A stretch of DNA of 64,000 nucleotides from Octopus sinensis. Its lineage: Eukaryota. The notes below the pieces were generated by a model, which saw nothing but the letters and a program-made list of their open reading frames with translations, ran no database searches and was not told the DNA's origin. How positions within the stretch are numbered: position 1 is the first letter of the stretch; every line of letters starts with the position of its first letter. Of the stretch, positions 8,180 through 60,880 are shown piece by piece. Where the stretch lies: assembly GCF_006345805.1 (NCBI RefSeq), contig NC_043007.1, forward strand, positions 41,230,001 through 41,294,000, given 5' to 3'. The position numbers and the translations under genes are program-made.

Positions 8180-8390
8180 TTTGTGTTAACGCTTGGCAAT
8201 TCTGTATTGGATCTGGACGTCGATCCATTGCTTGAGGTAACATGGAGATCCTGTTTCAGTGAAGCATGTGTCAATAACAACACAACCCTCACTTCCAAGT
8301 TTATAATAATTGATGCTTGTCTGAGAAAGATGCCCAGTTCATACCCAGACGGGGACTGCTTTGTACAGAGAAGATTTACCTTCCCAAGTG
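8180..8390 (+). CDS. Exon: end of signal peptide plus N-terminal half of C2/MNNL-like domain
   Basis: ccttccag|...|gtaaga; FVLTLGNSVLDLDVDPLLEVTWRSCFSEAC...IDACLRKMPSSYPDGDCF. The C-x12-C spacing matches the RVCLKHFQAVVSPGPC motif of Delta-like ligands. Confidence 0.75.
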
Positions 8391-8448
8391 GTAAGAGATA
8401 TTGTTGTTGATGTTGTTGTTGTTGTTACTGTTGTTGTTGTTGTTTCTA

Positions 8449-9764
8449 CTGGGTCATCCCATAAATAATGTGGATTTCTCAATTGCATAAACTAAAAGTC
8501 AGATGGGGATGGGATAAACTGCTTACATCAGCTTGCTATAAAAGCAGGTAGTAATTTTACCATGTGCTTATTCTTAGTGCTTATTCTCTTTCTATGTTGT
8601 CCCCTTGTGGGAAATAAAAAAAAAAGCTTATTCTTAGAGCAAGTTTTGAAGAGTGCAGTTCGATTTAAAAGTTATTTCTTCAAAGCTATAATGGAAGTAA
8701 CAAAGGAGCACATTCGGCATATTTTGCTTTACGAGTTCGATGAAGGCAACAAGGAATATTAATGTAGTATATGGGATCAGACAATAAGTGTAAGCCAGTG
8801 TCAACGGTGGATCCAGAAATTCTGAGCTAGAAACTACAGCCTAGAAAACGAGTCTCATCCTGGAAGATCTGTTAGAGCTCAATGAGGATATCCTGCAAAC
8901 CCTGGTGGGACAAAATCCCATTGTAACTATGGAAGAACTAGCAGAGAAGCTTGGATTTGGTCATTCAACCATTCATTGACACCTGCGTGCCATCGGAAAT
9001 GTCAGCAAATTGGGTCAATGAGTTCCTCAAACTTTCCAAGTTTAATCACCCACAGAAAGTGAATGTGTGTTCTCCTTTGCTGTCATGTCTCATAAATGAA
9101 CGTTTTTTGGACCAAATAGTGACTGGTGAGGAGAAATGAGTTCTCTATAAAAGTGTCAAGTGCTAAAGACAGTGGGTAAGGAAAGGAGAAACACCGGCAG
9201 CCCAGGCTAAGGGAGGTCTTCACCCACGTAGAATGTTGTTATCTGTTTGGTGGAACATGAAAGGTTTAGTCCATTTTGAAGTTTTAAACTAAATGATAAC
9301 AAAGATCTACCACAAGCAGCTTGAGTGGCTTAAGTCAGTGCTTGAAGAAAAACGACCAACTTTGGTTTCAAGATAAAAGGTCTTCTTCCATCAGGATAAT
9401 GCTCGGTCACATATAGCGAGGATGACATTTCAAAGGTTGGAGTAGTTTGAATGGGAAATGATCTCCACCCACCATATTCGCCGGACATTGCCCCATCTGA
9501 TTATCATTTATTTCACAGTCTTCAAAATCATTTGGATGGAAAAATATGAATTGTGTATACATGACCAGAACAGTAATGGAGGAGTATTTTTCATCAGGGA
9601 TAAGTGAATTTTAGAAGAGGGCCCTTGCAAGTCTACCAGATAGATGGAAGATCATTGTAGAAAATGAAGGAGAGTACATTTCAGATTCAAAAAGAACTTT
9701 GTTTATCTTAATTTTAAAAAATAAAATAAGTATAAAAAACTGCATTATTTATGGGATGACCGAA
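8449..9764 (+). mobile_element. Near full-length degenerate mariner transposon
   Basis: TIRs ctgggtcatcccataaataatg / cattatttatgggatgaccgaa, TA on both flanks; remnants of IVTGEEK, HQDNARSH and HPPYSPDIAPSDYHLF. Confidence 0.88.
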
Positions 9765-10169
9765 TATTTATGTGCTGTTGTTATTGTTGTTGTCATTGTT
9801 GAACTCTCTGACTTTACAAAAGGCTTTCCAGCTGTGACCATCCCATCAGATATTTTTACAGATCTAGCTGAATATAATGTGTTCTTCTATTTTTAAGACA
9901 AGATGGTTGAGGATGATTTGAGACAGATTTTGTTACCACTTCTACTGCATCAAGCCTCTCTTGTCAATTTGTGTTGCTGCTGTGATTGTTTAGCCCAAGG
10001 TCGACTCTGATTGAGTGGGCTTACGATTAAAGGTATTCCAGCTGCGACTGTTCTTTCTATTTTAAGATAGTAATTTGGTTTGAGAGGGATTTGATGATTT
10101 CTAGCAGATCAAGCACTGCATAGAAGCTCCCTTGTTGATTCATTTCTATCAGTAATTGTTGCAAATTTT

Positions 10170-10380
10170 GTTGTTGCTGCTACCGCTGCTGCTGCCGTTG
10201 CTGCTGCTGCCGTTGCTGCTGCTGCCGTTGCTGCTGCTGCCGTTGCTGCTGCTGCCGTTGCTGCTGCTGCCGTTGCTGCTGCTGCCGTTGCTGCTGCTGC
10301 CGCTGTTGTTGCTGCTGCTGCTGCTGCTGCTGCTGCTGCTGCTGTTGTTGTTGTTGTTGTTGTTGTTGTTGTTGTTGTTT
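10170..10380. repeat. (GCCGTTGCTGCTGCT)n higher-order repeat grading into (CTG)n and (TTG)n
   Basis: Direct reading. Confidence 0.95.
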
Positions 10381-58650: not shown

Positions 58651-58767
58651 ATATCAAAGAATGTGATTCTCGTCCATGTTTAAACAATGGTACTTGCTGG
58701 GAAGAAGGACCTGGAAGCTTCAAATGTCTGTGTCAAAATGGTTTCAATGGAGATTTATGTTATCATG
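58651..58767 (+). CDS. Exon: EGF16
   Basis: atttcaag|...|gtaagt; IKECDSRPCLNNGTCWEEGPGSFKCLCQNGFNGDLCYH. Confidence 0.92.
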
Positions 58768-59044
58768 GTAAGTCATGTTCTGCTAATTTTTCCTATCAAT
58801 TGGACAATAATGAAGGTGATTATGTTCATATAGGCATACATACATGTATGTATGTATGTATGTATGTATGTATGTATGTATGTATGTATGTATGTATGTA
58901 TGTATGTACATATGTATGTATGTATGCATGTATGCATGTATGCATGTATGTATGTATGTATGTATGCATGTATGTATGTATGTATGTATGTATTTATGTA
59001 TGTATGTATGTATGTATGCATGCTTGCTTGCATGCATGCATTCA

Positions 59045-59860
59045 TAGGTTACCAAACCGATCTGTAGAGGCAAGAAGCACTCTGCCCAATCAGATACTAA
59101 ATGATCTCATGACCCACAACCAGAAACAAGTGCCCACTACTGTGCATGAACTTATCTCTTCCAGCTTATTTCCACCTTAAGCCACTAACCTCCTTATAAA
59201 CATACCCTGAAATTCCACCATCTACTTCATCCCCAAAATTCACAAAATGGGACAAACTGCCCTAAACCTCTTAATCATGTTCTCTTTTCTGCCTGGATAA
59301 TCCAAACACCTTTTCACCATAGACATTAAATCATTCTACTCAATCACCACAACAGCCTATCAGCCCTTAAACACTCCCTACACCATTGCTCCCTATCTGA
59401 GCTCAGTACTACAATACTCCTCTACTTAGCCAAGCTCCCTAGACTTTAATTGCTTTTCTTTCTCTGGGAAAATTTACAAACTAATTAGTTGAGTCACTGT
59501 GGGAACCAAGATGAGACCCAATTATGTAAACCTTTTTATAGGTCACACTGAAGAGAAATTCAAGGAACCTATCCCAGAGCTGTTCAGTCATTATGCTGAT
59601 GACTGTGTCAGTGCTACCACGCTTACCAGACAACAGCTTGACAGTTTGATCCCTTCTGTTAAATCCTTTCCCTCTACCTTGAAATTTAGCTTTCTTGACA
59701 TCTCTATCACTAGAAACAATATCCATCTGTCTCCCTCCATCCACTACAAGTCTCTTGACTCCCATTCCTATCTCTACTACTCTTCTTCTCATGCCAGACA
59801 CTTTAAATCTGCCTTCTGTTCTCTCAATTCCTTTACCTTTCAAATCCAGATGTGAAGTGA
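59045..59860 (+). mobile_element. Penelope-like element RT remnant
   Basis: IYFIPKIHK, MGTKMRPNYVNLFIG, YADD, FLDI, YKSLDSHSYLYYSSSH. Confidence 0.7.
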
Positions 59861-60763
59861 TGCAACAATTCTGCCTGAACCAAATATGCCCTCAATCAGT
59901 TGTGGACCCCGCATTTCACTGAGTCCAGGCCAGCAACTGTGCCACTGCTCTCCTACCCTCTTTATGCACACCTAAAGATTGGATTTAGGTGTGCATAAAG
60001 ACCATGTCCTACTCTCTCTCTCTCTCTCTCTCTCTTTATATATATATATATATATATATATATATATATACAGATATACATATACAGTAGAACCTCAGTT
60101 TTCAAACAACTCTGACCACAAATAGATCATACTATATATATATATTATATATATATATATATATATATGTGTGTGTCTGTGTGTGGTGTGTGTGTGTGTG
60201 TATATATATATATATATATATATGTGTATATATATATATATATATATATATATATATATATATACATACATATTTGCATGTATATATATATATATATACA
60301 TACATATTTGCATGTATATATATATGTATGAATGTATATGTGTGTGTATGCATGTTAGTGTGTTTGTGTCTCCTTGTTTTGACATCATGCACTGATTGTA
60401 AACAAAGCCACCGTTCTTACAAAAACAGTGTCATATGTTTGCAGTCTTCCATAAAAATATGCCTGACCATTTAGTTATTCATGTTCAAGGACCAGAGGCA
60501 ATACTATTTTGTTTGGAAGTAGGTAAGAATTGGTAACAGGAAGTGCATCCAGCCACAAAGAATCTGCTTCAAGGAATTTTATCTAACCTATACAGTGGAT
60601 GTTAAAAGAAATATAAAGACGATAATGATGATGATGATGTGTACATGTGCTTATGTATCTATGTGTTATATTATATGGAGACAGTATATGTTTCTGTTTA
60701 ACACAACACAAATAAATATTAGTTTTTAACCATTTAGAACTTATCTAATTCTACTGTTTATAG

Positions 60764-60880
60764 ATATCAATGAATGTCTCAATGACCCATGTTATAATGG
60801 TGGCTTCTGTGAAGAAGGTGTTCCTGGTACTTTCAAATGCAAATGTCAGACAGGTTATTATGGTACCCACTGTGAGAAAG
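60764..60880 (+). CDS. Exon: EGF17
   Basis: tttatag|...|gtaact; INECLNDPCYNGGFCEEGVPGTFKCKCQTGYYGTHCEK. Confidence 0.92.

Follow-up and report, generated by a model that had tools for sequence, protein, structure and literature searches.

The stretch of Octopus sinensis DNA analysed here (64,000 nucleotides of contig NC_043007.1, positions 41,230,001 to 41,294,000 of the forward strand; the window below) holds the 5' two-thirds of one intact gene, at 8180–60880 on the + strand, and this gene is a divergent, lineage-restricted member of the DSL family and not a Serrate/Jagged or Delta orthologue. The encoded protein has an N-terminal domain, a DSL domain, a short linker and, within the window, 17 EGF repeats, and we hold this identity and architecture with high confidence. 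Few signalling proteins of animals are as conserved as the Notch ligands, in which the receptor-binding head is normally under the tightest constraint. The protein described here inverts the usual pattern, with a conserved stalk, a fast-evolving head that lacks the known Notch-binding residues, and a possible cleavage site between the two.

Gene structure and orthologues

Fourteen exons could be joined into 898 codons with zero stops and zero frameshifts (905 codons if an alternative acceptor at 14123 is used). All 14 have an AG acceptor with a polypyrimidine tract and a GT donor (GTAAG in 11 of the 14), every splice site is canonical and the intron phases are mutually compatible. The limits given in the initial annotation are exact, 8180 being the first base past an acceptor (...ctccttccag) and 60880 the last base ahead of a donor (AAG/gtaact), and the uninterrupted spliced frame that it described, with 17 EGFs and still open at the last exon, agrees with our rebuilt model. 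Since the last exon ends in phase 1 at this donor, the gene runs past the window; no further EGF or 3' exons were found in 60881–64000.

A search of 5.8 billion proteins for the closest relatives gave a best identity of at most 48%. The best whole-length matches were generic multi-EGF proteins (fibropellin-like and Notch-like entries), and among the matches was P0082, an orthologue of 626 residues in which an N-terminal domain and a DSL are followed by an acidic linker and by EGFs of the ordinary kind. It is encoded on L001 (Logan assembly of run SRR29271480, 3892 nt), a contig that lacks introns and is thus read as an assembled transcript, in which the N-terminal domain, DSL, linker and EGFs stand in one message, colinear with the window. 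Past one frameshift the protein resumes in another frame and reaches a total of 22 EGFs, five beyond EGF17. It has a hydrophobic N-terminus, a 23-residue transmembrane segment directly after the 22nd EGF and a 27-residue basic tail (TRKKRKGPRDFCFEIPFNRYYHIPDLM); Pfam matches are to EGF-type families only, with no vWC domain in the orthologue. The downstream features that the initial annotation had suggested looking for were thus followed on this orthologue, which has the transmembrane segment and the tail and lacks the vWC domain.

A genomic contig from a third source (L002; ENA ERZ21867824) agrees with the window in its exons, in their order and in where the introns lie, with introns that are much shorter, so that the same six exons span ~12.7 kb there (6310–18990) as compared to ~33.6 kb in the window (8180–41737). 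The octopus introns are ~2.6 times larger, largely through transposons and repeats. In Octopus bimaculoides, a 133-residue protein (P0135) joins three of the window exons almost identically, at 95–97% protein identity. A search with the N-terminal 250 residues, over a length range of 494–1571 residues, returned no full-length annotated protein, and exhaustive HMMER with the first 263 residues of the orthologue against 1.84 billion representative proteins found only four relatives of the N-terminal domain (P0082, P0123, P0199 and P0135), from which we infer that the family may be restricted to the cephalopod lineage.

The head is encoded by five exons. The first detectable coding exon ("exon 2"; 8180–8390, phase 0 to 1, acceptor ccttccag, donor G/gtaaga) starts the N-terminal domain and encodes four conserved cysteines in the pattern C-x4-C ... 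C ... C. Its Smith–Waterman score against P0082 residues 23–84 is 74, with the next-best background at 41, and the homologous exon in L002 is 6310–6522. The domain continues in exon 14144–14256 (phase 1 to 0, donor CAG/gtaaga), which lies within the O. bimaculoides model, would gain seven residues from the in-frame acceptor at 14123, and ends at an intron position, after ...PG(P/A)(I/L)Q, common to P0123 and L002. The next exon, of 58 codons (25266–25439, phase 0 to 0, aaaag acceptor, TTG/gtaagt donor), is joined to both flanking exons in P0135 and corresponds to 9938–10120 of L002. The DSL exon (31479–31611, phase 0 to 1, donor ACT/gtaagt) encodes CANYFYGTNCNTFCDATKHQLFSCDKAGNKVCQLGTVNEY and supplies the first base of the codon for the sixth Cys, and the linker exon (39613–39681, phase 1 to 1) opens with the GT that completes this codon, continues with PSPEILEFSKARVRRQSDSSPK and carries the sequence RVRR. 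The linker exon was the sole candidate in a scan of 31612–41611 for exons starting with G[TC], keeping the frame and having good splice signals; the RxRR motif played no part in its choice.

The N-terminal exons were hard to detect: default tblastn of P0082 against the window recovered the DSL and EGF exons and not these, exon 8180–8390 was found by Smith–Waterman comparison with stop-free segments, and 14144–14256 and 25266–25439 only via P0135. The segments 14257–14337 (VRIFNY...) and 29959–30108 (QKDNEGDTEM...) were dropped as parts of the N-terminal domain, since P0135 shows 25266–25439 to be the true exon, and a DSL donor at 31598 (CQLGT/gtaaat) was rejected because both the Pfam DSL match and the C-x8-C spacing of the orthologue extend to the sixth Cys. 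Two scans upstream of 8180 for a signal-peptide exon 1 (ATG, hydrophobic peptide and GT donor) gave only microsatellite artefacts at 7995–8138. No Rfam families were found within the window.

The stalk was located by a six-frame scan for cysteine-rich stop-free segments, which gave nine + strand blocks at 41.6–60.9 kb; spliced together, mostly at GTAAGT donors, they encode 664 residues without a stop. EGF1 (41612–41737) is ordinary, not DOS-type, and 63% identical to EGF1 of P0082. It is followed by the likewise ordinary EGF2 (43885–43998) and by EGF3–EGF5 (45902–46251), both exons being placed by Pfam EGF matches and splice sites. EGF6 and most of EGF7 come from 47973–48196, where the phase-0 junction HCE/VDIDEC matches the preceding exon. 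Splice sites and frame define 48947–49264 (end of EGF7, EGF8, EGF9 and the first part of EGF10), 54557–54982 (end of EGF12 and EGF13–EGF15) and 58651–58767 (EGF16), while the exon at 51059–51261 (end of EGF10, EGF11 and the first part of EGF12) is fixed by a phase-2 junction that restores GFYQCVC. EGF17 (60764–60880) shares 61% identity with its counterpart in the L001 protein.

RefSeq already has a model of the gene (XP_029643218.1, 'O. vulgaris'/O. sinensis assembly). Accessions of the series XP_0296... presumably come from an assembly that was later reassigned to O. sinensis. In the supplement of Liu et al. (2021; PMC8166818), the entry Ovu_XP_029643218.1 agrees exactly with the DSL of the window, sixth Cys included, and this identity matches the window to the 'O. 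vulgaris' genome analysed there. A further entry is Obi_XP_014787229.1, and P0135 contains its DSL stretch without a single difference (PMC8166818).

Could these exons nevertheless belong to two genes, one with the N-terminal domain and DSL (8180–31611 or 8180–39681) and an unrelated multi-EGF gene starting near 41612? Such a division would suit the introns of 8–11 kb around the DSL and linker exons and the fact that the O. bimaculoides protein stops at the DSL exon. However, the DSL exon ends inside the codon of the sixth Cys, which only the next exon completes, the DSL listed for XP_029643218.1 includes the completed Cys, and the phases run 1-1-1 through the linker into EGF1. Moreover, the exons follow one another in the same order on the single contig L002, and in a relative both parts are joined in the L001 transcript. 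We therefore consider the two-gene arrangement highly improbable. The initial annotation had staked its reading on transcripts that connect the C2/DSL exons with the EGF exons, and L001 supplies this connection by orthology.

Domains of the stalk and of the head

Pfam EGF matches the spliced peptide with 310 bits (E 1.3e-94) in 17 stretches. All 17 EGFs have their six cysteines, and all 112 cysteines of the protein (4 in the N-terminal domain, 6 in the DSL and 102 in the EGFs) are in place. A calcium-binding start, D/N-x-D/N-E, is found in 9 of the 17 EGFs, the O-glucose consensus C-x-S-x-P/A-C in 10, the O-fucose consensus C-x4-S/T-C in 11 and the motif C-x2-G-x-S/T-G-x2-C in 8. With 17 repeats in the window and 22 in the orthologue, the stalk is outside the range of Delta (about 6–9).

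The DSL profile (PF01414) scores 33.5 bits, against a gathering score of 24.2, over profile positions 1–44 of 46 in the stop-free segment 31251–31670, and the DSL of the orthologue scores 35.9 bits. With its above-threshold score and six cysteines that align with those of canonical DSLs, the domain belongs to the DSL family in the broad sense. A 28-residue cysteine-free linker follows and then a standard EGF, as the initial annotation had it (DSL, linker, ordinary EGFs). The DOS-type EGF1–2 that it had reported absent are indeed not found: no DOS-type Pfam model exceeds its threshold, with JAG1-like_EGF2 at 14.6 bits against 27 and matching away from EGF1–2, and EGF_DL_JAG absent. EGF1 and EGF2 are of standard type (DYTGELC and GFTGSRC) and lack the Trp.

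The N-terminal domain, of ~170 residues with four conserved cysteines, is more elusive. MNNL (PF07657) gave no match at E ≤ 1 either in the window exon or in the first 263 residues of the orthologue. Aligned by hhalign with 12 canonical MNNL regions, the orthologue group reached a probability of 0.3%, as compared to 80% for a profile of P0164 (O. sinensis 'jagged-1b-like', XP_036362565.1) and P0029 (Haliotis rubra 'fibropellin-1-like') and 98.3% for the D-group mollusc DSL proteins, which served as positive control. Smith–Waterman scores against MNNL, compared with shuffles, had z mostly below 2, and the sole local echo of MNNL is ACLRKMPSSYPDGDC against ACLKEYQSRVTPDGTC of Haliotis Jagged. 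Two AlphaFold2 (AF2) models, a longer one and one of the domain alone, were made on the orthologue sequence with shallow alignments; both are of low confidence (predicted local distance difference test, pLDDT, 50 and 55) and are all-beta, with eight strands. Foldseek against the PDB with the longer model gave as best matches DLL1 (4xbm), Jagged2 C2-EGF2 (5mwf) and Drosophila C2-DSL-EGF1 (7alk), with E 3.5e-3 to 7e-2. With the domain alone, C2 domains occupied 14 of the 25 best rows, RIM1 C2B first and Jagged-1 (5uk5_B, TM score 0.39, and 4cc0) among them; E was 0.03–0.1 for the top four and 0.03–0.3 overall, with TM scores up to 0.39 and no match at E ≤ 0.001. These models are weakly consistent with a C2-like sandwich. 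The architecture first claimed, C2, divergent DSL and at least 17 EGFs, is therefore borne out by Pfam for the DSL and the 17 EGFs, with only faint support for C2, which comes from models and not from sequence; likewise, in the HMMER check proposed with it, DSL and EGF are above threshold and MNNL gives no match.

Loss of the binding face and reversed conservation

In human Jagged-1, residues F199, R201, R203, D205 and F207 form the DSL face needed for both cis and trans interaction with Notch (PMC3415683). The window DSL keeps one of the five in our alignment: F199 is retained, R201 is replaced by D, R203 by T and D205 by H, and F207 falls in a two-residue deletion. The motif CRPRxDxFGH is absent, the Trp of the GW pair is replaced and the loop is shorter by two residues, while the six cysteines are kept. 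CRPRxDxFGH is retained in the DSLs of octopus Jagged and Delta that were aligned with it.

The head is also the least conserved part of the protein, the reverse of the situation in canonical ligands. Compared with the L001 protein, the N-terminal domain is 30% identical (4 of 4 cysteines aligned) and the DSL 37% (6 of 6), whereas EGF1–9 are 57% identical (51 of 51 cysteines) and EGF9–17 59% (51 of 51). The terminal branch of the window DSL in the DSL tree is very long, at 4.7 changes per column as against 0.4 for P0082, and this branch, together with the low identity of the N-terminal domain to its orthologue, could point to a decaying or non-functional octopus copy. Such decay is very unlikely in a gene of 898 codons in 14 exons with canonical splice sites and no stop or frameshift, with every cysteine in place and with an O. 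bimaculoides fragment that is 95–97% identical in protein.

Linker with a conserved RxRR motif

The linker cannot be aligned between species. It is acidic and has 38–47 residues in L001 and L002, in contrast to the 28 residues of octopus, which are not acidic. A furin-type R-x-R-R is nevertheless found in all three, as RVRR in octopus and RRIRR in both P0082/L001 and L002. Judged from this conserved position between head and stalk, cleavage by a proprotein convertase is possible, somewhat short of probable. Since no unpaired cysteine bridges head and stalk, cleavage would free a soluble head. Taken further, the protein might be a pro-ligand of the cephalopod lineage, in which a convertase cut at RxRR sheds the fast-evolving C2-like and DSL head, as a diffusible Notch antagonist or as the ligand of a new receptor, and leaves the 22-EGF stalk on the membrane. 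We regard this elaborate version as improbable; if true, it would be a mode of processing new for the DSL family, as to our knowledge shedding of the DSL head in this way has not been described for any of its members.

Relation to Jagged, Delta and other mollusc DSL proteins

Is the gene then simply the octopus Serrate/Jagged, with its DOS EGFs and MNNL hidden in unrecognised exons? The order of N-terminal domain, DSL and many EGFs does resemble Jagged, and RefSeq calls the paralogue P0164 'jagged-1b-like'. However, the orthologous transcript is without DOS EGFs, MNNL match or vWC domain, and the linker exon fits the flanking phases exactly, leaving no room for missing EGFs. O. vulgaris and O. 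bimaculoides each have a canonical Jagged that is entered separately, with a canonical DSL: Liu et al. include in their supplement a distinct octopus Jagged (XP_029648604.1 / XP_014779348.1) and two Deltas, all with the DSL signature CRPRxDxFGH...GW (PMC8166818). Mollusc Jagged proteins, for which matches to the MNNL, DSL and Delta/Jagged-type EGF models are precomputed by Pfam, have 64–68% identity among themselves in their first 330 residues, as compared to ~25–27% between the window protein and Jagged over DSL–EGF2. A hidden Jagged orthologue is thus extremely improbable.

Over this DSL–EGF2 region the best score is that of P0082 (113 bits), followed by P0164 (94 bits) and by P0029 of Haliotis and P0063 of Plakobranchus (92 and 91 bits), with canonical Jagged at ~40–58 bits. 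In a tree of the DSL alone, the window, P0082 and P0156 group together outside the canonical clade, and support for this is weak (79); this placement and the separately listed octopus Jagged speak against the standard Serrate orthologue that the initial annotation had named as a danger to its reading. Its view of a lineage-specific and non-canonical protein is upheld by the separate octopus Jagged and Delta genes, by the restricted set of N-terminal relatives and by the closeness of mollusc proteins without DOS.

Liu et al. screened 138 DSL-family genes for their tree and noted rapid differentiation of genes with 'DSL combined with EGF' in Lophotrochozoa (PMC8166818). With a RefSeq model, a catalogued DSL and an expansion and divergence of lophotrochozoan DSL genes already on record, the gene is less new than the initial annotation assumed. 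Its architecture, orthologues, linker motif and binding-face loss are not described in that study (PMC8166818), and our literature search turned up no account of the complete architecture, of colinear orthologues, of a lost binding face, of a conserved RxRR or of the reversed conservation.

Possible mechanism

What would such a protein do? We propose a type I membrane glycoprotein in which a long EGF rod, stiffened by calcium and O-glycosylated, would present the C2-like and DSL head at a distance from the cell surface, in the manner of canonical Notch ligands. The head would act as a non-canonical modulator of Notch, via cis-inhibition or competition, or would bind a changed partner, and a convertase cut at RxRR would release it in soluble form. 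A canonical, force-transmitting activator of Notch is not what we expect, because four of the five DSL face residues are lost, DOS EGFs are absent and the head evolves faster than the stalk. To the role itself, of a non-canonical Notch modulator or a ligand with changed partner, we would attach, judging from sequence, slightly less than an even chance. The explanation as a whole, a lineage-restricted DSL protein working through such a head and rod, appears to us evenly poised between right and wrong.

Several points weigh against this proposal. Neither Pfam nor hhalign nor Smith–Waterman gives a significant match between the N-terminal domain and MNNL, and the structural comparison of this domain draws on AF2 models with pLDDT 50–55 and Foldseek E-values that all exceed 0.001. 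The join of the exons relies on the transcript of the orthologue, splice-phase logic and gene models. RxRR has been seen in three sequences only and could be a plain basic patch, and the window DSL sits on the very long branch described above. Finally, loss of the canonical binding face could mean that there is no interaction with Notch at all.

A different reading is a Notch-independent adhesion or matrix protein in which the calcium-binding EGF (cbEGF) rod is the functional part and the DSL head is a relic or is bound to an unrelated partner. The stalk at 57–59% identity against 30–37% for the head, the single face residue kept, the generic multi-EGF proteins as best whole-length matches and the cytoplasmic tail of only 27 residues in the orthologue would all be in line with it. 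On the other hand, the six DSL and four N-terminal cysteines are kept across orthologues, so the head is still under structural constraint, and a head, an EGF rod and a transmembrane segment make up the architecture of a DSL ligand. The O-fucose and O-glucose sites, typical of Notch-pathway proteins and not exclusive to them, also count against this reading. We consider the adhesion or matrix role unlikely, if still a serious contender, and retain the Notch modulator or altered ligand as the working proposal.

If the protein does act on Notch, it would be a natural case, in a lineage whose nervous system is large, of DSL ligands turning into modulators or into diffusible factors. Otherwise, a DSL head would have been recruited to a new partner. 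In either case the exon map provides a model of the full N-terminal part that can be tested, for a gene that is mostly fragmentary in public protein sets, and 'jagged-like' names on models of this kind are no guide to orthology.

Repeats and transposons in the window

The window is AT-rich and dense in microsatellites and transposon remnants, and long CAA/TGC-type and TG/TGTA microsatellites are very dense across all introns. Two copies of one non-long-terminal-repeat (non-LTR) retrotransposon lie on the same strand as the gene (+), one upstream of exon 2 (606–2360) and the other in intron 4 (26689–29211), with Pfam matches to RVT_1 (109.6 bits) and zf-RVT; they are 99–100% identical over the compared stretches, which suggests recent activity. 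Decayed remnants of mariner/Mos1-type transposases, also on the + strand, are found in the introns after exon 2 (8496–9893) and after the DSL exon (33427–34489), with Transposase_1 scores of 44.6 and 63.7 bits, a weak HTH_48 match and frames broken by stops and shifts. On the – strand at 57054–58219, an open stretch of 279 codons with a broken continuation contains the motif YVDDLKIY, typical of reverse transcriptases, and has no Pfam match; it is probably, to judge from its sequence, an old retroelement lying antisense in the intron that precedes EGF16.

Three tandem copies of a ~537 bp unit occupy 31780–33400, a short way downstream of the DSL exon, two of them identical over 300 nt and the third at 80%, each with the same 45-codon open stretch (RTILSGKTIADLL...). 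This repeat was missed by Tandem Repeats Finder (TRF), as its period exceeds the limit of 500, and was recovered by a separate repeat search. A short interspersed element occurs on the + strand at 11860–12270, 18420–18950 and 19630–19940, with similar pieces at 1–190 and 5650–5890. It translates as ...SQGFGRPEAIVEDT(C/F)PRCHAVGLN(L/P)EPCGW..., usually with (TG)n/(CA)n microsatellites at its flanks.

Comparison with known systems

The window protein shares with Jagged/Serrate an N-terminal domain predicted to be beta-rich, a DSL with six cysteines and a long run of EGFs, many of them calcium-binding and with O-fucose and O-glucose sites, and its orthologue is likewise a type I membrane protein. 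It differs in having no MNNL signature, no CRPRxDxFGH or GW Trp, one of the five face residues and no DOS EGF1–2; the direct DSL–EGF1 junction is replaced by an RxRR linker of 28–47 residues, and in the orthologue there are 22 EGFs instead of 16, the juxtamembrane cysteine-rich/vWC domain is missing and the tail is very short. Octopus has, in addition, its own canonical Jagged.

The closest non-orthologous proteins over DSL–EGF2, namely P0164, P0029 and P0063, share with it the same non-canonical DSL loop, the lack of DOS and a very similar EGF1 (CxSAPCKNxATC ... GIDDC). They are, however, shorter and without the RxRR linker, and the N-terminal domains of P0164 and P0029, combined in one profile, still match canonical MNNL in hhalign, unlike that of the window. 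By eye, P0164 and P0029 end in a cysteine-rich module with no transmembrane segment; a 'chitin-binding-like' label for this module was discarded, as Pfam gave no such match for P0029. P0164 belongs, with P0203 and P0175, to an octopus family (O. sinensis, O. vulgaris) of near-identical DSL genes of another type, which go under the names 'jagged-1b-like' and 'notch homolog 1-like'. At least eight O. vulgaris DSLs in the list of Liu et al. are of the type ...YCSQGYYGPNC...RFQCD..., two of them in one protein (PMC8166818), and this set is a local expansion hidden by automated names.

DSL proteins without DOS EGFs are also known from C. elegans, in LAG-2, APX-1 and the secreted DSL-1 (PMC3415683). 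The last resembles the soluble head that cleavage at RxRR would yield. Nematode ligands differ in their very few EGFs and in their reliance on separate DOS co-ligands; we know of no such partner in cephalopods. The functional model that we favour is the one known from vertebrate DLL3, a non-activating, cis-inhibitory modulator that has a strongly diverged DSL and N-terminus and no DOS. DLL3 is specific to vertebrates, with ~6 EGFs and no known furin-type linker. The resemblance to the octopus protein lies in the diverged head and the missing DOS EGFs and does not imply a direct relationship.

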